DNA of 63,744 nt, counting the filler, from Octopus bimaculoides (Eukaryota), in NCBI RefSeq assembly GCF_001194135.2. It is 7 parts of 6 records of this genome, joined end to end, with 100 filler letters (N's around TTAATTAATTAA, not from the genome) between each part and the next. Parts side by side here need not be neighbours in the genome. Positions count along the whole stretch, not along the records: positions 55,764 to 62,178 come from NC_068994.1; 6 more parts are not named here. The stretch is one strand, 5' to 3'. Position numbers and translations under genes: made by a program. Under the pieces are notes generated by a model. It was given only the letters and a program-made list of their open reading frames with translations, had not been told where the DNA came from and made no database searches. Below, one piece after another: positions 15,334 to 62,685 of this stretch (position 1 is its first letter; every line of letters starts with the position of its first letter).

Positions 15334-16808
15334 CTTGACCGGGTAGTCAATACTGTCCAGGGAATATGCACTACGCGCAAAGATAACAAGACAGTTAGTA
15401 ACTATGGTATCGGGAACAACACTAATAAAAATGAAAATAAAAATAAAAACATAAGTTCTTCACACAAACCCCAAACTAATTATTGGGATAAGAAGTATAG
15501 CGTACATAAAGGTAAAAACGGGAATAAACGTGACGTAAAATAGTATAACTCCACTCACTTCAATTACATAAGAGATACTATTATATGTAGAAAATTATTT
15601 AGCATGCTAAAGTGCAATTTCCCTCCTTCACACAAATATTACCGTTTATTCTCCCATAGAAATGTTAAGGTCTCTTACTCAACACTCCCTAATCTAGGTA
15701 CAAATATAGCTGGCCTGAATAAGAAGCTCATATCCATGGCCTGGAAAATTAATAATAATACCCCGAACAGCACTGCTCCTAATAAGAATTGCAGTAGGAA
15801 TAACAATAATAATAATAATATTAATATTCCTCCTATCACTACCATCTCAACCGACATTAATACTGTACACGCCGATATCATCAGCGAACAAGTCCTGTCA
15901 GTAGATATAATTTTGGCATCAATCAACCTGCCACTAAAATGGACAGTAGCTGTAACAACTCTGCCGCAACAGCTAATGGTAGCAGGTTATTGATTCCATT
16001 AACTTAAGCTCACACCATACCACTCCCTACAACCTTACAACCCTAACACTCTCTCCACTAGCAGGTCAGAACCACCTACTTACTTCCATTCATGTTGTCG
16101 ATATGTTCAACGTACACTGTCCATCCTCGATCCTCTAGTATCACTATCTGAAAGCCAAATCTCTTACAACAGTGCTTAGTACCAACATTCTCCGACCCTG
16201 GGCTCCGTAACTAATTATATTAGTATTGATCCTAGTAATATAAACTCCGGTAACAATCATGCGAACACCAGTAATTCTTGCGAATTTGAACTATTACGCC
16301 ATAATAACGTAGGATTGCGTACCCGTAATAATAAAGTTCATGTCTTGGAAAATGTTGAGTGCAATTGCTTAGGTAAAATGTCATGTCCGCTTTCTGGTCG
16401 ATGTCTAGCAGTAAATGCGGTTTACAAATGTAATGTTGTGACGGAGACCAATACTTGTACTTATATTGGCTACTCCGTAAATCTCAAGGAATGCTTACGT
16501 AACCACTATTCTTACTTTGAATTAAGACACATAGAGCGGGTAGAACTTCTCTAGCCACGAAGATTTGGGAGCTCAAGATCGACAATGTTGAATTTGATTT
16601 GAGCTGGGACATTATTAGGGCCGCTAAACTGTACTCAAACAGCAGATAAGGGTGCAGGCTTTGCTGCACGGAATTGTTTGAAATTTTGAAGAGATCAAAT
16701 TGCGAAAATCTAGTAAATAATAAACTAGACTTTCGTCTAGCATATATAAGGCTACCCGCACCATTAAATATTTTAAGGACATTAAACGACCTCTATAAAA
16801 GCTCTTAA
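15333..16808 (+). mobile_element. Naiad-like Penelope element, RT thumb to GIY-YIG endonuclease, pseudogenised
   Basis: RDVK*YN…FPPSHKYYRLFSHRNVKVSYSTLPNL, then CNC…CPLSGRC…VYKC…YIG, then (after a frameshift) TSLATKIWELK…SWDII…CRLCCTE. This motif order is that of Naiad/Chlamys PLEs. Confidence 0.8.
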
Positions 16809-17960
16809 CCGAGGGTTAATCTAATTTACTCCCTCTATTGTTGACCCAAAAGTCGATTGATCTGTTTAATTGTTTTGAGTCCTTCAAGTCTCGTTCTTCT
16901 TTACCATCACTTCCTAACCATTCTTACTATACTTGCATCGTGTGCTATATTGAAGGAACTAATCATTCTATTTGTGGCGTCTCCAGTATTATGCAATAGC
17001 GATAGCAAAGATATCTAACCTAGAAGTAGCAGCCTACACACCCTAGCCAGTTCTTTTCTAATCCCACTAAGTAAGTAAGCCTTATACCAAGATACAGTTA
17101 TTTGTGCTGTGCTTGTTAAATAATAGATGGAACACCCAATCTAATCCTCTTACCCGCGACTATTCTCTGGAGTTGTATTACCTAATTCACACAATGGTGA
17201 TTGTATTATCTAATTAAATAATATCGACACCACCTATATAACAGTCCAAATTGTTAATCATTAGACTACTTCCTACAGCTGGCTTTTTTTGATATCCTAT
17301 CTGGTATTTCCTCTAACTCCGTACTAGGTGTAGTTTATCCTCACGATAAGTAGTACTCTACTATTACTACCAGGTTTTTGCTCTCCAGGCAAACATGTCC
17401 TAATATTACAAGCGGTCTCCACTAACCCTTACAACAACACTCTATATCTTTCCACTTAACCAGATAAATCAATCGCGCTTAACACTACAATTCCTTAAAA
17501 GTTAAATCTCATTATTCGATTGCTTTCATACCTTTACCCAATATTTAAACTATACCCATAGAATACCCCTAAATTCTATGTATCTCTGTCCTCTTCCCTT
17601 TGTTCTTTACCCTTATCTCTCGAATGCATACATAAACCTAATTGGCTTATGTATGCATTTATTTTTCTTTACTTTTACTTTTTGCTTTTTTTATTCTTTC
17701 TTTGTTCTTTATCCTTAACTTAACTTCGGTCCTCTCCCAGCTACCTACTTCTCCAAGCATAATATGATAAAATATCACCAAGCTTCGTGGCGCGGTCTTT
17801 TCTCTAGTCCTTGAAGGCTTGGTATAAAAATCGGCCCTTTCTCGTCTTGTATGAGCAATAACGAACATCTTCATGCACTACCTGCCTGATAAGAAACTCA
17901 GACACTCCCATTTTCTTGGTGATAGTGCCCAACTGACCGTACTATACTTTGTAGTAAAAA
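16809..17960 (+). mobile_element. Probable non-coding tail of the Penelope-like element
   Basis: A C/T-rich stretch continues directly from the endonuclease stop and ends in an A run. The assignment is an inference. Confidence 0.4.
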
Positions 17961-18044
17961 AAAAAAAAAATGGGTATGCATGAAATTAGAAATATAAAAT
18001 GGCGACAATTTACCCATCACACCTTGTATATATATATTCTTTTA

Positions 18045-18110
18045 TTCTTTTCCTTGTTTGCGTCATTTAACTGCAGTCATGTTGGAGCACCGCCTTGTGT
18101 GAGTGTATGT
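18045..18110 (-). mobile_element. SINE family A tail end
   Basis: CTTGTTTGCGTCATTTAACTGCAGTCATGTTGGAGCACCGCC. Confidence 0.7.
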
Positions 18111-18111
18111 A

Positions 18112-18147
<36 letters not shown>

Positions 18148-18824
18148 GGTGCANNNNNNNNNNNNNNNNNNNNNNNNNNNNNNNNNNNNNNNNNNNNNNN
18201 NNNNNNNNNNNNNNNNNNNNNNNNNNNNNNNNNNNNNNNNNNNNNNNNNNNNNNNNNNNNNNNNNNNNNNNNNNNNNNNNNNNNNNNNNNNNNNNNNNNN
18301 NNNNNNNNNNNNNNNNNNNNNNNNNNNNNNNNNNNNNNNNNNNNNNNNNNNNNNNNNNNNNNNNNNNNNNNNNNNNNNNNNNNNNNNNNNNNNNNNNNNN
18401 NNNNNNNNNNNNNNNNNNNNNNNNNNNNNNNNNNNNNNNNNNNNNNNNNNNNNNNNNNNNNNNNNNNNNNNNNNNNNNNNNNNNNNNNNNNNNNNNNNNN
18501 NNNNNNNNNNNNNNNNNNNNNNNNNNNNNNNNNNNNNNNNNNNNNNNNNNNNNNNNNNNNNNNNNNNNNNNNNNNNNNNNNNNNNNNNNNNNNNNNNNNN
18601 NNNNNNNNNNNNNNNNNNNNNNNNNNNNNNNNNNNNNNNNNNNNNNNNNNNNNNNNNNNNNNNNNNNNNNNNNNNNNNNNNNNNNNNNNNNNNNNNNNNN
18701 NNNNNNNNNNNNNNNNNNNNNNNNNNNNNNNNNNNNNNNNNNNNNNNNNNNNNNNNNNNNNNNNNNNNNNNNNNNNNNNNNNNNNNNNNNNNNNNNNNNN
18801 NNNNNNNNNNNNNNNNNNNNNNNN

Positions 18825-18873
<49 letters not shown>

Positions 18874-20239
18874 ACACACACAAGCAGTTCATCTCGGCGT
18901 TGCCCGGGTGCTATGACCTACAAGCAATTGTATTCCTTGCTCCTTTCTTTTGGGCAGAACCGGCACAGCTGATATATATAGTTAATGGAAGTTATTGTTT
19001 GTTTAATAGTGAAGGGCGAGGGTGCAATTTGCATGAAAGTGCATTCTGTTCTTAAGAAGGATCAGAAACTATGTATTATTTTATCGTACAAAAAGAGGTT
19101 AATACGATTTTGTTCAGAAATCACGTTTTCAAAATATTAATTTCCCCCTATCCTCACCGCAATTTCTTAATTTGTAACTTTTTTTTTGTCTACGTAGATA
19201 CAGAGATTACGAATCTGGAAAAAAAAAGATATTTTATAGTTTAATTTTTCTTAAGAAAACACTCGATGCCCCTTCCCCCACCTCGCTCCCCCATCTTTCA
19301 AAAAGCTAAAATCTCACTTTTGTCTGATGTTTTCCGCATGCGCAGAATTCTACTGAAATAGTAGACTTAAAAAATACCAGACTACCACCAGCAAACCCGA
19401 CATGCTAGAAACAACAGGTAAATGACGTTATTTCTGAAGAAACTCTCCCGCTTTCCAAAAAGCTAAAAGTGAAACATTGGGAGTGTGTAGTTTTTCGAAA
19501 GTGGTGAGGTAATAGGTAGAATTCTTAAAGATTCGTACTCTTTTTTTCTTCATGGATTACCAAGAATAAAAAAATGAATTTGGTGTGGAGATGGAGAAAA
19601 TTAAAATATTGAGAACGTGTTTTCTGGGTGAAATCCTAATCTCTTGTATCGCAAACATAAGAATCGGAAGAAATTTAGGAAAAAAATAAGGTGGGGGACG
19701 GAGATGTCACCTCGGACATGCTAGATAGAAGAGGTAAAGGACAGAATTTCCTTTTAAGTTTATATCGAAGATCAGGTTTATAAATACGCTCATCATAAAC
19801 ACAAATTACGCAATAGAAAAAGATAATTTCAATTGGATTTGAGCTGTAATTTGCGCGAGCACAATGCATGAATTAACATAATTTGCACCGAAGTTTTACT
19901 TAGAGTGTGCGTATGTGCATGTGTGTGTGCATGTGTGTATGTGTGTGTGTATGTGTGTGTATGTATGTGTATGTGTGTGTGTGTATGTGTGTGTATGTGT
20001 GTGAAAGGAATGCTATTTTATAGCATTCTTTCGTTTTTGAAGCAAAGTTGTCAACTCGACATATATGGGATCATATGATTGTTCGTTAATTTCTGTAAAA
20101 TTGTTTTAATTTCTGTATGCTTTGAAGAGAGCAGAAATTGAAAGGGAGGATAAAGTGAAAAGGCGACATTTGCTTTGAAGTGAGAGGATAAAGTAAAAGA
20201 GATGAGAAAGTGTAAGATGTACGTGTATATGAAATGGAC

Positions 20240-20256
20240 GTCTGTGAGAGGGAGAA

Positions 20257-20311
<55 letters not shown>

Positions 20312-20617
20312 AAGAGAGAGTGAATGAATGAATGAAGGTGTGTGTTGTGATGTATGAATTTTTTTGCATGTATGTGTAAGTGGCACTCACTAATTATCTC
20401 TCTCTCTTTCTTTCTCTCTCTCTCTTTCTTTCTCTCTCTCTCTTTCTTTCTCTCTCTCTCTCTTTCTTTCTCTGTCTCTCTCTTTCTTTCTCTCTCTCTC
20501 TCTCTTTCTTTCTCTCTTTCTCTTCTCTCTTTCTTTATCTCTCTCTCTCTTTCTTTCTCTCTCTCTCTTTCTTTCTCTCTCTCTCTTTCTGTCTCTCTCT
20601 CTCTCTCTCTCTTTCTT

Positions 20618-20680
<63 letters not shown>
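20240..20680. repeat. (GA)n followed by a compound (CT)n/(CTTT)n tract
   Basis: Visible directly; it explains the ER- and LS-repeat ORFs. Confidence 0.95.
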
Positions 20681-20703
20681 TATTATTTTTCATACACACG
20701 TAG

Positions 20704-20792
20704 GCAGGGGTAAAGAATATGCACACCACCCGTTTTCGGCGTAAACCTAAACTTAACTCTAAACACCGGGAGTGCGTATTCTTTACCTTTGC
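20704..20792. mobile_element. 89-bp MITE-like hairpin element with ~24-bp TIRs
   Basis: GCAGGGGTAAAGAATATGCACACC versus GGGAGTGCGTATTCTTTACCTTTGC (reverse complement GCAAAGGTAAAGAATACGCACTCCC). Confidence 0.6.
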
Positions 20793-20816
20793 TCATAGAT
20801 ACATATGCATACATTT

Positions 20817-20848
<32 letters not shown>

Positions 20849-21959
20849 GCTGTATTTTCTTATAACATGTAGAAAAATGGATCTCTTTTAATGCCATGTT
20901 TTTGGTCGTGGCTTATTTTAATACAATATTTATGTGTACATTTTCATAATTGTTTGTCTAAGTAGAATTCTACGCATGCGTGAAACATCGGACGAAAGTG
21001 AAACGTTAAAAGCAAATCGAAATATTTTCCGAAAATGACCTCAAGATTGTGTGACCCAGCCTAGTTGCCAAGGTTATTTTAGTTGTAAAAGAGAGTTGTT
21101 GAGTCAAAAACATAGTTTATTTGGTAGACAGATAATAAGCAGCTTTCATTATAATACAGATATGACTAATTCTGAGAAACAGTACTTTCATTATTCACAC
21201 ATCGTCACTCTCGTAAGGCAACACTTCGTAATTTTGGTTCAAATTGGAAGTGTGAAACTATTTACATTTTGTAATGAAACCTGGCCGGTGTAGAGAAGTG
21301 TATTTGAAATAGCTATAGCTGGTTGTTGCGATAACGTAGAAAATATGTAAATGAAAATAAAGTTTATTTGGCAAGTGTAATTGAATTGATTGTTCTGGTC
21401 TTAACATCAGTTGGTAAGAATAGAAAATCATTTGATGACACCTTTTTGTTTGTAATTGGCTATCTTGTTGCAGGTTCAATCCGTGGAATATTGAAATGAT
21501 GCCCATCTTGTCCATTCTACAGAATAAGAATATACTGGAGAGTATGATAAGAGGGATGAGTCTTTGAAACACGTTTAAGGTTGTTATCTCGAAAACGACT
21601 GAGAATATCAGGATTTTTATGGGGATTACCAACCATAAGGATGGCTACTTCATTAGACGTGTGCTCATTAAACCAGCGTAAAATGTTCTTTACTATAGTT
21701 TACTAGAGACATAACGAACGCAGAAACACACACACATACACACACTCATAAAATTGATAATATTGAAAAGAGCAAAACGTAGGCACACGAAGTTCAAGCG
21801 AAACGAAATGTAGTCAATATAGGAACAAAACATACTCTCTGTAGCATAGTTATGCTATAAAAATATGGAAAGTCACCAACTTAACAAACGTTGGTATGCG
21901 TCACCAATGTAAGAAAGTACAGAAAGTCAACATTTAGAACTTGTACTAAATTTTATAAA

Positions 21960-22374
21960 ATTCACGATTGAATGAATGCAGTAATGGTGCGAGTAGCAGT
22001 ACCTGGAGGAGGGATGCGGGTGGGAATCCTTGAGGGACCGAACATGCGATGCTAAACGATTCCGACAGGTTGCCATTTACTTTGACCACCGAACACATGT
22101 CGCTGTACATTGCAGCGATCCAGCCTCTGAAAACGGGACCTAAACCAGCCGCCTTAAGGACAGCCCCCAAGTACTGATGGTCGACTCTATTGAAAACTTT
22201 CGATTGATCCAAATTGATCAGGGCCCTACCCATGCCAGGTTCTTTACTAACTCTCTCTATGATATATTGCGTGAGGTGGTGGTTGTCGTGGATAAATCTG
22301 TTGGGGATAGCGCAAGTCTGCGCATCACCCACCAGTCTGTGAACGACAAGCGCCAACCTCTTTGCTAACACCAG
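21960..22374 (-). mobile_element. L1/Tx1-like LINE reverse transcriptase fragment
   Basis: LAKRL…AQTCAIPNR.IHDN…ALINLDQSKVFNRVDH…VKVNGNLSESF…SVPQG, matching RT domains 2-4 of the L1/Tx1 type. Confidence 0.9.
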
Positions 22375-22850
22375 AAACTGAAGACCGGTGGCTATGGATG
22401 AAGAATAGTGACCTGAAGATAGAGAAATAAGTACTTATATGCGCATCACAAGAACAAGCGTCAAAGACTAACTCTATGAAGTGCAGAATCGACAACACTA
22501 CCGACAGTGACAAATACAGAATGTGTGGTGAGAGGGGTGAAACGGTATGGCACATTGTTAGCGAATGTCCGAAATTGGCACAACACGATTACAAAAGACA
22601 CTGGGATCTCTGTGGAAATCACGACCTACAGAGAGCCATGAGGTGGTATGAGAAAACCCCAGAAGGAGTCACCGAGAATGAAGAGTGCAAAGTCCTATGG
22701 ATGCAATAATTCAGTGCGATCACCTGACCAGACATCGGAAACCGGTCATTATTGTGTTGAATAAAAAAGAAAGAAGTTTCATGATAATCGACATAGCATG
22801 TCCCGGTGACAACAGGATCAAAGAGAAAGAGGAAAAACTGAACAAATAAT
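22375..22850 (+). mobile_element. R4/Dong-like LINE fragment (CCHC and RLE region)
   Basis: WLWMKNSDLK, YRMCGERGETVWHIVSEC, and HRKPVIIV…IIDIACPGD. Collinear with about 14510-15000. Confidence 0.88.
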
Positions 22851-55763: not shown

Positions 55764-55895
55764 AGGGTTTAAAAAAGCTGAAGCACCGCTGCAATAAGTG
55801 TGAAACTGAGAGGGGAATATGCTGAATAAAATCATAATTAAGTGAGCCTCCTGTATTTTTTTACCCAAAGTCAGGAACTTTTCGAAACGCCCTCG
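55764..55895 (+). mobile_element. Mariner 3' end with right TIR
   Basis: GFKKLKHRCNKC (mariner C-terminal pattern) followed by GTCAGGAACTTTTCGAAACGCCCTCG|TA, whose reverse complement TACGAGGGCGTTTCGAAAAG is a mariner-type TIR. Confidence 0.7.
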
Positions 55896-56139
55896 TAAAT
55901 AAATACTATAGGTTTCAATGCATTAATTTGCCCGCCCCCCCCGGCTTAAATGTTGTTAAGGCATTACTGCCACTTAAGATGAACCACCGCGACTCGGTAG
56001 CGGTGGTTCAGGGCTGACGGTTTCCGACTCGTTCTCAAAGGCTTGATTACTTCGATGTAGAGCGGTGGATTTACATACTCTGTTCGTCAAAGTTGTGTCA
56101 TCACTCACGGCGCGCCTTTACGTTTTAGTTCTTTAGTCA

Positions 56140-56520
56140 TCGCTGCAGGAACCCAGGGTCCTTGTTGAGATTTTTCGCTCGAACTGAGACGCAGGAGTGT
56201 CGTGCTGGACACGACAGTAATCGTGGTTGCCTGCACTGTACTGAATAAACATGAGCCGATGACATGAGTATGCATTTAACGAGGACAAACTGGTGATTTT
56301 GTAGTTCGGTACGGTGGCAAGTCAAAGTTGGGAAGCGTTTGGGTCTGTGGAGCGAGGGTCCAGTTAAGATGCTTGGTGTTGTTTGTGCGTCAAACCTTTT
56401 GGTGTAGAGTGCTTGGGATGAGCTAGGTTACTAGCAGGGTGGCCAGCGTCACACAGAAATGGGCTGAAAGGAAGCTCAAACAGAATGCACGCGCTTTGAT
56501 GGCGGATTCAAACATCATTC
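56140..56520 (+). mobile_element. Degenerate L1/Tx1-like RT C-terminal fragment
   Basis: ADDM, LWSEGPVKMLGV and RVASVTQKWAERKL across frameshifts. Confidence 0.6.
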
Positions 56521-56579
56521 ATCATGGCCATATTTTGGCGTAAGACCATTAATTTCGGGGAAGAGCTAAGTCGATTACA

Positions 56580-56745
56580 TAGAACCCAGTGTTCAACTGG
56601 TACTTGTTATCGATCTCGAAAGGATGGAACACAAAATCGACCTCGGCGGAATTTTGAACTGAATTTGAAAGACGGACGATATGCTGCTTGCATTTTGCTC
56701 AACGTGATAACAATTTGGCCAGCCGGCTGCCTTGCCCATGTAATT
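56580..56745 (-). mobile_element. SINE family B copy
   Basis: CAACTGGTACTTGTTATCGATCTCGAAAGGATGGAACACAAAATCGACCTCGGCGGAATTTTGAACT…GACGGACGA…. Confidence 0.75.
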
Positions 56746-56759
56746 TATTACTGCCGCAA

Positions 56760-56831
<72 letters not shown>

Positions 56832-57285
56832 ATACAAGTAACCCGCATTGTTACTCCTCATCCATATCTCTCATATATATANNNNNNNNNNNNNNNNNNN
56901 NNNNNNNNNNNNNNNNNNNNNNNNNNNNNNNNNNNNNNNNNNNNNNNNNNNNNNNNNNNNNNNNNNNNNNNNNNNNNNNNNNNNNNNNNNNNNNNNNNNN
57001 NNNNNNNNNNNNNNNNNNNNNNNNNNNNNNNNNNNNNNNNNNNNNNNNNNNNNNNNNNNNNNNNNNNNNNNNNNNNNNNNNNNNNNNNNNNNNNNNNNNN
57101 NNNNNNNNNNNNNNNNNNNNNNNNNNNNNNNNNNNNNNNNNNNNNNNNNNNNNNNNNNNNNNNNNNNNNNNNNNNNNNNNNNNNNNNNNNNNNNNNNNNN
57201 NNNNNNNNNNNNNNNNNNNNNNNNNNNNNNNNNNNNNNNNNNNNNNNNNNNNNNNNNNNNNNNNNNNNNNNNNNNNNNNNNNNNN

Positions 57286-57314
<29 letters not shown>

Positions 57315-57318
<4 letters not shown>

Positions 57319-57530
57319 TTGTGTGCCTGTGTTTGTTCGCTCCACCATCGCTTGACAACCGGTATTGGTGTGTTTACGTCCCCGTAAATTAGCGATTCGG
57401 CAAAAGACAACCGATAGACTAAGTACTAGGCTTACAAAGAATAAAAGAATAAGCCCTGGGATCGATTTGCTCGACTAAAGGCGGTGCTCCAGCTTGGCCG
57501 CAGTCAAATGACTGAAACAAGTAAAAGAAT
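57315..57530 (+). mobile_element. SINE family A 3' half (head lost in the gap)
   Basis: CCACCATCGCTTGACAACCGG…GTACTAGGCTTACAAAGAATAA…GGCGGTGCTCCAGC…TGACTGAAACAAGTAAAAG. Confidence 0.9.
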
Positions 57531-57665
57531 AAAATAATACAAATGAAACGAAAATCAAAATGGATTTGAAGTTTCTTAACCGGGAGGTTCATCAAAATGC
57601 TTTAATGGAATTCGGAATTTAAGAATTTAGGACTGATATCCTAATTGCTACTTGACTAAAGAAAC

Positions 57666-57980
57666 TGGCGCTCCGTCGCTTACGACGACGAGTGTTCCAG
57701 TCGATCCGATCAACGGAACAGTCGGTTCGTGAAATTAACGTGCAAGTGGCTGAGCACTTCATAGATCCGTGTACATTTAATGTATTTCTCCAGGAGATTC
57801 AGCGTGACACAGAGCCTGGCCCTTTGAAATACAGGTACTACCCATTTTTGCCAGCTAAGTAGACTGGACTAATTCGAAGTGAAGTATCTTGCTCAAGGGC
57901 ACAACTTGTCGCTGGAAATCGTACTCACAACTTTACGATCGTGAGCCGAATAGCCTAACCACTAAGCCACATATCCTCAC
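57666..57980 (-). mobile_element. SINE family D (tRNA head, CORE-like segment, tail shared with family C)
   Basis: Minus strand has GTGGCTTAGTGGTTAGG (A box), GTGCCCTTGAGCAAGATACTT (CORE-like), and a tail aligning to 58066-58235. Confidence 0.8.
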
Positions 57981-58050
57981 CGCCACTTGACTAGATTAGA
58001 ATTAATTGTCGAATTCCACACTTTCTGACATTGTCGACGTTGTATATAGT

Positions 58051-58443
58051 GTTGTTGTTGTTGTTGGCACTCTGTCGCTTACGACGTCGAGGGTTCCAGC
58101 TGATCCGATCAACGAAACAGCCTGCTCGTGAAATTAACGTGCAAGTGGCTGAGCACTCCACAGACACGTGTACCCTTAACGTAGTTCTCGGGGAGATTCA
58201 GCGTGACACAGAGTGTGATAAGGCTGACCCTTTGAATTACAGGTACAACAGAAACAGGAAGAAGGAGTGAGAGAAAGTTGTGGTGAAGAGTACAGCAGGG
58301 TTCACCACCATCCCCTGCCGGAGCCTCGTGGAGCTTTTAGGTGTTTTCGCTCAATAAATACTCACAACGCCCGGTCTGGGAATCGAAACCGCGATCCTAT
58401 GACCGCGAGTCCGCTTCCCTAACCACTGGGCCATTGCGCCTCC
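58051..58443 (-). mobile_element. SINE family C, full length, with (CAA)n tail
   Basis: Head GGAGGCGCAATGGCCCAGTGGTTAGG…GGTTTCGATTCCC; ends …CGACAGAGTGCC(AAC)n. Resembles the described octopus OK/OR SINEs; the exact family name is unverified. Confidence 0.88.
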
Positions 58444-58529
58444 TGTATATAGTGTAAACATGTGGTATAAGCATTACTATCTTTCAAAATCCTGCTGCAT
58501 TTCACATGGAATTTTTGGTCCTCCAAAGT

Positions 58530-58611
58530 CGTCTTGGTGTATAAGTCGATCCACCATCTTTTGGCTGTAAATTTTAGTTTGAAAAATTCGACTTGTATGC
58601 TGGAAAATACG
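58530..58611 (+). mobile_element. pogo/Tc2-type right-end remnant
   Basis: Internal inverted pair GTATAAGTCGA…TCGACTTGTAT followed by GCTGGAAAATACG, resembling pogo-type TIR ends as recalled. Confidence 0.45.
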
Positions 58612-58783
58612 AAAGCTAATTGGTCTTTTATATTTGACAATTCCCAATTGTTCTGTTGACCATTCTTGAACTTTTGACTTTAAATGGGGGAAGCTGTGAT
58701 TATGCTTGCAAAGACGATAGATATTATTTATATTCATGTTTGGAATTATCTTTTGAAACCTCCGTCCTTCTTCTGTGATTCAG

Positions 58784-59011
58784 ATTGTGTCATACGTACT
58801 CGATCAGGGAGCAATCCTTATTTCGTCCTCACTTACCACCCTGCGACACCGGGCTTTCGTATAAAACTTGTTAGTCTATGGCAGCAGACATCCTACCACC
58901 CCTGCCGGCCTGGTTCCACTTTATTCTACAATGAAACGATGTGGTGGCTTGACAAAGGATGCGAGGGCAGGTTTCAAATTCTTGAATGCCCTTTACTTCC
59001 GATCGATTATG
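58784..59011 (+). CDS. Internal coding exon encoding an ADEL/DUF3011-like lectin domain
   Basis: Acceptor TCCTTCTTCTGTGATTCAG, donor ATG|GTAAGT, 228 nt, phase 1 to phase 1, no stop. It encodes xCVIRTRSGSNPYF…IKLVSLWQQTSYHPCRPGSTLFYNETMWWLDKGCEGRFQILECPLLPIDY, matching the recalled ADEL repeat pattern Q.S..PC..G.T…TMWVD.GC.A.F. Confidence 0.85.
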
Positions 59012-59042
59012 GTAAGTTTTTGGCTCTTTATATACATATAAA

Positions 59043-59204
59043 GACGCAGGAGTGGCTGTGTGGTAAGAAGCTTGCTTCTCAACCACATGGTTCTGGGTTC
59101 AGTCCCACTGTGTGGCACCTTAGGCAAGTGTCTTCTACTATAGCCTCGGGCCGACCAAAGCCTTGTGAGTGGATTTGGTAGACGGAAACTGAAAGAAGCC
59201 CGTC

Positions 59205-59258
<54 letters not shown>

Positions 59259-59468
59259 GTATGTATTTGTGTGTCTGTGTTTGTACCCCCACCATCGCTT
59301 GACAACCGATGTTGGTGTGTTTACATCCCCGTAACTTAGCGGCTCGACAAAAGACAACCGATAGAATAAGTACTTGGCTTACAAAGAATAAGTCCTGGGC
59401 TCGATTTGTTCGGCTAAAGGCGGTGCTCCAGCATGGCGGTAGTCAAAATGACTGAAACAAGTGAAAGA
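59043..59468 (+). mobile_element. SINE family A, full length, intronic
   Basis: Complete head-(TA)n-tail copy starting about 30 nt after the exon donor. Confidence 0.93.
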
Positions 59469-59477
59469 ATATATATA

Positions 59478-59608
59478 CAGGGTGTCCACAAAATCTGGGT
59501 ACATGGGGATTAACATACTTTAAGAAATTATTATTTCTTATATTCAATAGTTTATGTTATGATTTTATTTACTCCATGTACCCAGTCTTTGTATATGTGG
59601 GTACTCTG
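59478..59608. mobile_element. 131-bp Tc1/mariner-type MITE with TA flanks
   Basis: Left TA|CAGGGTGTCCACAAAATCTGGGTACATGG. Reverse complement of the right end is TA|CAGAGTACCCACATATACAAAGACTGGGTACATGG. Confidence 0.8.
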
Positions 59609-59739
59609 TATATAAATATGATCGAGGTGGCACGATTTTCCGAAAGAAGCTAGGAACTTTTGTTTCCATTGGTTTGGCAAATAGTTGATATTATTCTACA
59701 GTCGCAGCTCCTGATAGAAGCGTTAATGTTTTTCAGTGT

Positions 59740-59945
59740 CAGAGACGAGATTTGAACATAGATATCGCGAGGCATCATCCCGTCCGACGCTCTAAACAAT
59801 TCCGCATTATCCACCGCCCTGAACTGGTATTTTTGTTTTTATCGAGCTCGAAAGGATAGAAAGACAAAGTTGATCTTAACGTAATTCGAACCCAGACTGC
59901 AGAGAGTCAGAAAAAATATCGCGAGTCATTCTACTCAACACTTAA
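59740..59945 (-). mobile_element. Degenerate SINE family B fragments
   Basis: GAACTGGTATTTTTGTTTTTATCGAGCTCGAAAGGATAGAAAGACAAAGTTGATCT…TTCGAACCCAG. Confidence 0.6.
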
Positions 59946-60504
59946 ATTTATTTCATGAGGAGTCAAAATTTTCGTCGCACAGCTGCGACCTTTTCACTGA
60001 CATAACTGCAACTACTTGAAACACTGTTACCAGTCAATTCTGAATGAGTTAGTTTTTTTCTTTTCTTCTTTTTATTCTAGTTTGTTGAGCTTAGAGACGT
60101 GTGTTTGCTGTACTTACGTACACAGACTCTCATCCCATCGTATCAGTCACTAATCGGTTAGTCATTTTTAGTTTACACACACACATATTTGTATGTAAAT
60201 AAGTATATAGTTAAGTGTAGCCACATTTGTAAGTTTATATTAATGCTTTTTATGTTTATTACTATTGCTTTCGCTTTTAACATTTGACCATTCATCAAAA
60301 CACCACAAAGACCTCTAATGCCCCAACACATAATTTTTAAAAGTCTGTTCCCAGTCTTTGTACACTTTAAAGTATATAGCAGAAATTTCTAATTTCCAAG
60401 ACTTAAACCACAAAAGAAAAGTTTTGATATAATGTTTTGTACGGAAGGAAAATTTAATAGCACGATTTTGTGAGTTATGAAATGCGTCCTTGATGATGTA
60501 GCGT

Positions 60505-61100
60505 GTGTATGTATGTATGTATGTATGTATGTATGTATGTATGTATGTATGTACGCATGCATGTATGTATGTATGTATGTATGTATGTATGTATGTATGT
60601 ACGCATGCATGTATGTATGTATGTATGTATGTATGTATGTATGTATGTATGTATGTCATTATTCAGTTTATTTCAAGATTTCTTGCCAATAAAGAAAGAA
60701 CCGGTTTCTAACCTCGATCCAAGGGTCCTTCATTGAAATTTCAACATCAACAGCAGGGTATTTTTGTTTGTATGTATGTATGTATGTATGTATGTATGTA
60801 TGTATGTATGTATGTATGTATGTATGTATGTATGTATGTATGTCATTATTCAGTTTATTTCAAGATTTCTTGCCAATAAAGAAAGAACCGGTTTCTAACC
60901 TCGATCTAAGGGTCCTTCATTGAAATTTCAACATCAACAGCAGGGTATTTTTGTTTGTGTGTATGTATGTATGTATGTATGTATGTATGTATGTATGTAT
61001 GTATGTATGTGCAGATTTGTATGTTTTATGTTTGTATACTCATGCATATATTTGCATATCTAGATATGCTCATATATATTTAAATGATAAACGTCTGGAA
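60505..61100 (-). mobile_element. 3' UTR of the (CATA)n-tailed LINE, with the terminal ~110-bp unit tandemly duplicated between (TATG)n tracts
   Basis: Near-identical units at about 60655-60768 and 60843-60953. The 61008-61100 segment matches 11225-11290 on the opposite strand. Confidence 0.85.
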
Positions 61101-61834
61101 AGTTGTACATGTATGTATGTACGTACATTTATCATTTCATGTGGATCATTTGATCAAATCCAATTCAAAGCATGTACCACTTTTAGCCATGAACTCCCTA
61201 TAAAAATAGAGCAAGCTTCAAACACTAGTCAGAAGCAAGACAGCTGTGACACAAGCCACGTCTTATGTCTTTGGATAATGGAACAGAAAGTTTAACATCC
61301 AACATATATTCTTATTTTTATTCGTATATTTCCTTTTATACCTCCTGTATCTCTCCCTTTCCAAAATAACTCCTTATACAGAACTCTATCATTTTCTTCT
61401 ATTTAACTCTCTCATATCGTCTCTGATGAAATGGGATATCTTTATATCCACGAAACAGCTGTAAGACTATCTTTCTCTTTTATAAAATGTCCTAGAAATT
61501 TCACACTGCTTTGGCTTAGTTGTCTCATCTTTTTAAACATGTATGTGTATATGCATGTATGTATGTATGTATGTATGCATGTATGTATGTTTGTATGTAT
61601 GTATAAATCTTCTTTCTCTCTTAGTCTTTCCCTCTCTTTCTTTCTCTTTCTGTTACTAGTTTTAGCTAGAGGCAGTATTTAGTTTTGGTTTTCTTTATCG
61701 TTGCCTTTTTCCAACACTCGCCATAAACCCCACTGCCCACCTACTGTTTCTAAGCTTCGTCTCTTTAATATCATCCGTCTGTCGCTCAATTGGCAAATAT
61801 ATAAATAATCGTTATTATTGTATTTTTCCAACAG

Positions 61835-62157
61835 CCTTGACACCAACTGAAGCGCCCGGAGGGAGTCTGGAAGTAAACGAAAATCACAAAAGCAACAGGA
61901 AGCATTTTAAATTCGACGCCGACACTATAACCCCGGGCTATTACCCGAGCGAAAGAAGGAAAACCGTACAAGGGAGAAGCGGCAACGATCGAAAACAACA
62001 CACACACGAAGTAGAAGCTTCCGGTAACGTTCATCCACTTACAATGGAGAAGAGTGACACAACCACTGCCAGTCGTCATGAAGCCAACAGCTCTCCAGCA
62101 CTATTGATCACGACTTTGTTGCTAGTTGTCGCCCTTGGAATACATACTCTTCTGTAA
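61835..62157 (+). CDS. Terminal coding exon: polar stalk plus hydrophobic GPI-anchor-like signal
   Basis: Acceptor TTGTATTTTTCCAACAG, phase 1, in frame with 58784-59011 (G|CC = Ala). It encodes ALTPTEAPGGS…SDTTTASRHEANSSPALLITTLLLVVALGIHTLL*, with no charged cytosolic tail. Confidence 0.85.
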
Positions 62158-62685
62158 CTGTATATACATATATATATANNNNNNNNNNNNNNNNNNNNNN
62201 NNNNNNNNNNNNNNNNNNNNNNTTAATTAATTAANNNNNNNNNNNNNNNNNNNNNNNNNNNNNNNNNNNNNNNNNNNNAATTGCTAAAATATTATTTATT
62301 AATTATAATATATGACAACACCTCTGACAGCTGATTTTATAATTATCTAAAATTATCTAAAAGTAATTTACATTACTTTTAGATAATTTATAAAATGAAT
62401 CTCAACATATATTTCTAATGGGTATATCTTTACTACCTTTGAAGAGATTCATTTTATAATGATTACTGAATTGAAACAGCTGTCAGAGATGTTGTCTTAC
62501 TTTATAATGAAGGAATAATATTTCATTAATTACCTGTCCATTTTCTCTTTATTCATTAAATATATAAATATATGAACCAGGGTTTATATGTTTACCTTAT
62601 AGTTGAACTTTCTATAGATTGGTAACTAACCAGTATTTTCATTGGATTTTATTATCCCTTAATGAGGTCTATAACCTTTACCTGA

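Follow-up and report, generated by a model that had tools for sequence, protein, structure and literature searches.

What is known about the function of the DUF3011 domain (Pfam PF11218) comes from two soluble egg lectins of Aplysia, AKL and ADEL, which are built of three repeats and are the only members of the family whose function has been tested (PMC5484111, PMC8306185, PMC13027682). AKL of A. kurodai and ADEL of A. dactylomela comprise approximately 218 mature residues and bind galacturonic acid and galactose (PMC5484111), and carbohydrate binding is the sole activity demonstrated for the family as a whole (PMC5484111, PMC8306185). Here we looked at a member of this family in the genome of Octopus bimaculoides, which lies within a stretch of DNA of 63,744 nucleotides made up of seven genomic parts joined by filler (the window). 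The relevant piece, at window positions 55764-62178, is identical to positions 16310-22724 of the locus sequence L001 from O. bimaculoides chromosome CM046614.1 (assembly GCA_001194135.2) and carries the 3' half of LOC106874738, a single-copy cephalopod gene whose product shares its Pfam family with ADEL yet is not an ADEL-type protein.

The octopus protein resembles AKL and ADEL in its membership of PF11218, its tandem repeats of about 70 residues and its predicted passage through the secretory pathway, and it has the same molluscan cysteine layout, in which each repeat begins and ends with a single cysteine, has two invariant ones in its centre and lacks the second N-terminal cysteine of the bacterial repeats. 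Unlike these soluble three-repeat lectins it has two repeats, a stalk of 83 residues and a hydrophobic C-terminus with the features of an anchor signal, identity to them is only in the region of 25-30%, and the terminal cysteine of the octopus repeat lies two residues later. A HMMER scan of 1.84 billion representative proteins returned 248 matches, among which the named gastropod proteins were capsulin, a D-galacturonic acid binding lectin, lectin ADEL-like (Aplysia californica) and lectin ADEL (Patella vulgata). The matches also took in an unnamed hypothetical protein from Solemya velum, a bivalve, and bacterial 'DUF3011 domain-containing' proteins. In phmmer searches the A. californica ADEL-like lectin was recovered with an E-value of 9.9e-11 and the Patella ADEL lectin with 3.6e-6, alongside the D-galacturonic acid binding lectin of Plakobranchus. 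The top non-cephalopod matches to the whole protein were capsulin of Elysia marginata (E 2.7e-31) and the D-galacturonic acid binding lectin of Plakobranchus ocellatus (E 1e-14), which share the repeat unit and differ in having 12-26 repeats, PAPLTT-type linkers and no membrane tail; their high scores arise because many repeats are summed, single repeats giving values of 1e-4 to 1e-6.

At the level of single repeats the best non-cephalopod matches were to repeats of bacterial type (E of about 3e-10), and repeat 1 of the octopus protein matched the Aplysia ADEL-like protein with an E-value of 2e-8. The bacterial DUF3011 proteins, from Acidobacteriota, Pseudomonadota and others, have the core motif RQxS...C..G..WG....IWV..GC.A.F.V in common with the octopus repeats, and differ in having 2-6 repeats and an extra N-terminal cysteine pair, and in lacking the terminal cysteine, the stalk and the anchor signal. 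Both pairwise identities and best-match scores place the octopus repeats no nearer to ADEL than to the bacterial DUF3011 repeats. The ADEL/DUF3011 likeness claimed in a preliminary description of the locus is supported by PF11218 and by the gastropod matches annotated as ADEL, without a special closeness to ADEL. More generally, cephalopod repeats match bacterial DUF3011 repeats at least as well as they match gastropod egg-lectin repeats, despite their molluscan cysteine layout.

The two exons in the window join into 183 residues that are identical, over their whole length, to residues 125-307 of XP_014778059.1 (100% identity and 100% coverage in a search of 5.8 billion proteins). This entry is the uncharacterized protein LOC106874738 of O. 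bimaculoides, 307 residues long, which is also UniProt A0A0L8GU44. Given this match, the segments at 58784-59011 and 61835-62157 are coding exons 3 and 4 of four. Exon 1, encoding the signal peptide, and exon 2, encoding the first repeat, lie 5-9 kb upstream and outside the window piece, exon 2 at approximately L001 13795-14010, and a tblastn search of the piece with the full protein returned only the two known exons. The exons of the spliced gene originally placed at 58784-62157 were exact, whilst the piece holds only the 3' half of a four-exon coding sequence. Both the gene model and its Pfam match are already public at NCBI and UniProt, where the protein is unnamed. The features of the piece, all on the + strand, are as follows.

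55764-58783, +, 3' part of intron 2 of LOC106874738, with exon 2 mapping upstream; holds an N gap, microsatellites and interspersed repeats
58784-59011, +, coding exon 3, phase 1 at both ends, residues 125-200; contains the whole of DUF3011 repeat 2
58786-58995, +, core of DUF3011 repeat 2, C126-L195, supported by PF11218, cysteine spacing, family columns and AlphaFold2
58930-58938, +, N-glycosylation sequon N174-E-T, located in the loop that precedes the WW motif; the orthologues of O. sinensis, of Argonauta and of the decapodiform likewise have NET or NES
59012-61834, +, intron 3, in phase 1, opening with GTAAGT and closing with a pyrimidine tract and CAG; holds (TA)n, (TGTA)n, a 187-bp tandem duplication and repeats resembling short interspersed nuclear elements (SINEs)
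61835-62082, +, start of coding exon 4, encoding the polar stalk (residues 201-283), in which T, S, E, K, R, G and P abound
62083-62094, +, A284-N285-S286-S287, containing the candidate omega sites for a glycosylphosphatidylinositol (GPI) anchor
62095-62154, +, C-terminal hydrophobic segment P288-L307 (PALLITTLLLVVALGIHTLL), at which the protein ends without a cytosolic tail
62155-62157, +, stop codon TAA, to which the ends of the proteins of Argonauta and O. sinensis correspond in position

Exon 3 is 228 nt long and is preceded by an acceptor reading ...TTCTGTGATTCAG (also written ...TGTGATTCAG), with its 3' end at ...GATTATG/GTAAGT, and exon 4 is preceded by the pyrimidine-rich ...TTGTATTTTTCCAACAG with its CAG and closes with the TAA. 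Both introns are in phase 1 and the joined frame runs from D/CVIRT to HTLL and the stop, the remaining two frames of both exons being interrupted by stops.

Orthologues of the gene were found in at least four cephalopods. That of O. sinensis (XP_029645105.1) is 93% identical and that of Argonauta hians is 56-58% identical with the same four-exon structure. The sole syntenic block of nucleotide sequence conserved with A. hians across the whole gene corresponds to window positions 58753-59017 (79.6% over 265 nt), and in exon 3 35 of the 49 differences between the two species fall at third codon positions, giving a dN/dS of 0.05 by the Nei-Gojobori method. The splice sites of this exon are identical in Argonauta (CAG/AT and ATG/GTAAGT), and intron 3 showed no conservation with that species beyond low-complexity matches. 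A decapodiform genome contig (L004) carries both repeat exons with the same phase-1 borders, and an intron-less, mRNA-like contig of 1.9 kb from a sequencing-run assembly (L003) encodes an orthologue of 352 residues in one open reading frame (ORF) that runs through the equivalent junctions, with proteins near-identical to its product on more than 80 sequencing-run contigs. Surroundings so rich in microsatellites and SINEs would suit chance ORFs or a decayed pseudogene fragment, however the dN/dS of 0.05, the conserved splice sites, the orthologues and a high-confidence fold prediction leave that explanation with a negligible probability, and it was dropped as already refuted by the conservation data. 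Two phase-1 exons with canonical splice sites and an open region of 183 residues, as first described from the window, are confirmed by the NCBI and UniProt models, by the intron positions of the orthologues and by purifying selection. We regard the reality of the gene and its membership of DUF3011 as practically certain.

A second public model of the gene, A0A0L8GTL6 (P0002), is 231 residues long and joins exon 2 straight to exon 4, skipping the repeat-2 exon. As both introns are in phase 1 the skipping of exon 3 preserves the reading frame, and this model could be alternative splicing giving a one-domain form or could be an annotation error.

The whole of XP_014778059.1 matches PF11218 in two stretches with a score of 55.8 bits (E 7.7e-15), well above the Pfam gathering cut-off of 25 bits, whereas the exon 3 peptide alone scores 18.7 bits (E 0.0018), which is below it. 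Repeat 2 can nevertheless be aligned by a profile of 588 repeats of the family, and it retains every invariant column. These repeats, taken from 151 proteins, served as the family sample for column conservation. Two cysteines and one phenylalanine occur in all of them, and conservation is also strong for G (97%), S (95%), W (85%) and Q (70%). Repeat 2 carries the family motif as QQTS...C...WWLDKGCEGRFQI, and of the signature Q-x-S, Cys, W, G-C, F it keeps the Q, S, C (100%), W, G, C (100%) and F (100%). Its deviations from the family are W/Y/F to L, G to F, V to L and R to E, with L-F replacing the usual W/Y/F-G pair. The reading of WLD for WVD and of GC-E-G-x-F for GC-R-A-x-F, both picked out in the preliminary description, proved to be real, and the changes are rare among family repeats, with L at the position in question in 0.5% of them. 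The cysteine- and tryptophan-containing domain noted there was likewise borne out, with four cysteines and three tryptophans counted in addition to the NET sequon. The cysteines lie at 58786, 58903, 58960 and 58987 (C126, C165, C184 and C193).

Repeat 1 is canonical, with YGY, WWV and GCxAxF, and is 30% identical to repeat 2 with the same cysteine spacing of 39/19/9. All of the seven cephalopod repeats align without gaps at 71 residues. Between species the copies of repeat 2 are 52-86% identical, compared with only 23-32% between repeat 1 and repeat 2, and the duplication of the repeat is therefore older than the split between octopods and decapodiforms. Outside the window, a protein of 170 residues from a sequencing-run assembly (P0108) has a signal peptide and a single repeat. 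Of the non-orthologous proteins it matches repeat 2 most closely, with an E-value of 2e-14 in the repeat set, and it may be a one-domain cephalopod paralogue.

An AlphaFold2 model of repeat 2, computed from an alignment of 65 repeats, is an all-beta domain of six strands with a mean predicted local distance difference test score (pLDDT) of 94.7 and a predicted template modelling score of 0.81. In the full-length model residues ~50-195, covering the two repeats, have pLDDT values above 90, the stalk at 200-286 is disordered (pLDDT 40-58), and terminal helices are predicted at 20-39, in the signal peptide, and at 288-306, in the C-terminal tail. Sequence searches of the PDB with the exon peptide, with the whole protein and with a profile of the 65 repeats returned nothing meaningful, and with the PDB sequence-profile searches empty we take it that there is no solved DUF3011 structure. 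A Foldseek comparison of the repeat 2 model with the PDB gave no significant neighbour, the best being resistin and the C-terminal modules of PCSK9 (E 0.4, template modelling score 0.50, probability 0.92). The resistin head and the PCSK9 C-terminal modules are, like the model, small disulfide-rich beta sandwiches of six strands, however with 10-13% sequence identity and no profile relationship this is a resemblance and not homology. Assignment of the repeat to a lectin fold was considered and dropped, the best Foldseek matches being weak (E 0.4 and a score of 0.5).

At the N-terminus, a hydrophobic core of 13 residues at residues 27-40 followed by S-V-S-A/E fits a signal peptide by rule of thumb and is conserved in the orthologues. 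The preliminary description had read a polar stalk of about 85 residues, an ANSS motif and a terminal hydrophobic stretch from the end of the ORF, and this layout was found much as described, the stalk covering 83 residues (201-283), the A-N-S-S motif residues 284-287 and the hydrophobic segment residues 288-307. The stalk is only about 40% identical to that of Argonauta, its length and character being retained. The C-terminus reads ...RHE-A-N-S-S-PALLITTLLLVVALGIHTLL-stop; no residue beyond E283 is charged, the protein ends with the hydrophobic run, and Kyte-Doolittle hydropathy reaches 2.8 over 15 residues. A simple rule scan, which looks for small residues at omega and omega+2 and for a hydrophobic tail from omega+9, placed the omega site at A284 (A284-N-S) or N285 (N285-S-S), 22-23 residues from the C-terminus, with N285-S-S doubling as an N-glycosylation sequon. 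The small residues thus precede the hydrophobic C-terminus by 9-10 residues. The tail is the same in O. sinensis, and in Argonauta the corresponding residues are G-N-G-G-S-S, followed by a hydrophobic end of 20 residues. The putative GPI anchor of the first description is thus consistent with a C-terminus that obeys the classical rules in the scan and is conserved in both species. Among the 150 best family representatives a hydrophobic C-terminus was found only in the cephalopod orthologues.

These features suggest a model in which the product would enter the secretory pathway by way of its N-terminal signal peptide, which is presumably cleaved, and would display two tandem, disulfide-bonded, all-beta DUF3011 domains of 71 residues, one per exon. 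The disordered stalk of 83 residues, probably glycosylated, would keep the domains off the membrane, and the C-terminal signal would probably be swapped, at A284 or N285, for a lipid anchor of the GPI type. Judged by their homology with AKL and ADEL, both domains would most likely bind carbohydrate, and the product would then be a bivalent cell-surface lectin for adhesion to cells or matrix, or for the recognition of microbial glycans. Tethering to the membrane through the C-terminus is very likely in our view. GPI attachment specifically, judged from sequence features, is probable, and carbohydrate binding, for which the argument is one of distant homology (~25-30%), is a shade less so. The complete arrangement of a GPI-tethered, stalked, two-domain surface lectin is the one towards which we lean, by a modest degree.

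A number of observations weigh against this picture. The tail of the decapodiform orthologue reads A-N-S-G-K-A-N-S, then about 12 hydrophobic residues and then 10 polar ones (KSSHICSGLN), and because this tail is short with a polar end the anchor signal is not uniformly classical. In the octopus protein itself, the spacer from A-N-S-S to the first hydrophobic residues is short. Three positions that are strongly conserved in the family are replaced in repeat 2 (W/Y/F to L, G to F and V to L), and in the single-repeat search this repeat matched neither the Aplysia nor the Patella repeats of ADEL-like proteins. An octopus transcript contig for the protein was not found, the members of its 90% cluster coming from NCBI and UniProt only, and for this reason the junction 59011^61835 rests on gene models, conservation and relatives.

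The short spacer would also suit a type I membrane protein of the same architecture, in which the C-terminal helix stays uncleaved as a transmembrane anchor without a cytosolic tail and takes the place of the lipid; the uncharged C-terminal run of 20-24 residues is of a length to span the bilayer and is predicted to be helical. No basic or cytosolic residues lie beyond this helix, however, an absence that GPI signals typically show and that is unusual in type I proteins, and the run of about 12 hydrophobic residues in the decapodiform orthologue is too short to span a membrane. We consider the transmembrane anchor unlikely, and the features of the C-terminus suit a GPI signal better than a transmembrane helix, which makes attachment of a GPI anchor the preferred inference.

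That the protein might not be tethered at all also has to be weighed, as every other eukaryotic family member sampled lacks the tail, the missing octopus transcript contig leaves room for an artefact, and the existence of a second UniProt isoform means that the models differ. The product would on this account be soluble and secreted like ADEL and AKL, with the hydrophobic C-terminus an artefact of the gene model or a feature of a minor isoform. The tail, however, shares its exon and reading frame with the stalk and has the stop directly after it, it is kept in three octopod species, and decapodiform transcript contigs likewise end in a hydrophobic segment, all of which make a soluble product decidedly improbable.

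Whether the domains of the tethered protein bind sugar is a separate matter. Carbohydrate binding is the only activity demonstrated in the family (PMC5484111, PMC8306185), repeat 1 is canonical in its YGY, WWV and GCxAxF motifs, and tandem small beta domains on a stalk would be in keeping with a common layout of lectin receptors. Set against this, identity to the functionally tested lectins is low, those tested are Aplysia egg lectins only (PMC5484111), repeat 2 combines its three substitutions with the lack of a direct match to the ADEL-like repeats of Aplysia and Patella, and its best, if weak, fold neighbours, resistin and the PCSK9 C-terminal modules, are not lectins. A role for the DUF3011 domains in protein-protein adhesion or in structure, to which the label of the Aplysia lectins could not be transferred, accordingly deserves to be taken seriously as the less likely outcome, sugar binding by both domains being the reading that we prefer.

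The introns that flank exon 3 are rich in repeats. Intron 2 contains an assembly gap of 404 N bases at 56882-57285, with (TATC)18 on one side (56760-56831) and (TATG)n on the other (57288-57318), and a gap of equal length is present in the chromosome-level assembly. Intron 3 contains long (TGTA)n microsatellites together with a 187-bp unit present in 2.4 copies of 96% identity (60506-61010 and 61539-61604). Copies of interspersed repeats with 87-91% identity occur in both introns, pairing 57342-57508 with 59289-59447 and 57666-57814 with 58065-58213, and more copies are found elsewhere in L001. Two segments, 58345-58445 on the - strand and 59036-59125 on the + strand, have by eye a tRNA-derived look, with A- and B-box-like motifs resembling the heads of SINEs. 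ARAGORN found no tRNA in the piece, and a focused Rfam search of the two tRNA-like SINE heads gave no tRNA match. Rfam hits to mir-297, mir-1277 and mir-3149 were rejected as artefacts, being far below their gathering scores and lying on (TGTA)n or (TA)n microsatellites.

Around the gene, the 10 kb to each side of LOC106874738 contain no other called gene in O. bimaculoides. At the locus of A. hians (L002 22637-28419) a rhodopsin-type G protein-coupled receptor gene (7tm_1) lies approximately 4 kb downstream on the opposite strand.

A literature search found no paper on cephalopod or membrane-tethered DUF3011 proteins, on LOC106874738 or on GPI-anchored lectins of cephalopods, in agreement with the initial view that a surface-tethered lectin of this kind is not known to have been described in this group. 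We regard the protein as an unstudied member, and possibly a tethered architectural variant, of a known lectin family and not as a new kind of system. A bolder and tentative proposal, which we hold with considerable reserve, is that cephalopods have turned a lectin domain of bacteria and of secreted mollusc egg proteins into a GPI-anchored, stalked and bivalent receptor, which could sense microbial or matrix glycans rich in uronic acid and in which inclusion or skipping of exon 3 could switch between two binding domains and one. If true, this would make the protein the first DUF3011 lectin bound to a membrane, as well as a candidate for a pattern-recognition or adhesion receptor specific to cephalopods.

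The DUF3011 family is conserved in both octopods and decapodiforms with a distinct architecture, in which two domains are followed by a stalk and probably by a lipid anchor. For a small and poorly understood family this would add a cell-surface branch, and its two domains offer a compact construct for studies of structure and of glycan binding. The gene also provides a data point on how a mostly bacterial domain reached the molluscs, the cephalopod repeat being one phase-1 exon, and the bacterial-like scores of the repeats, together with the encoding of each repeat by one such exon, bear on whether the animal domain had a bacterial origin, once or more than once.

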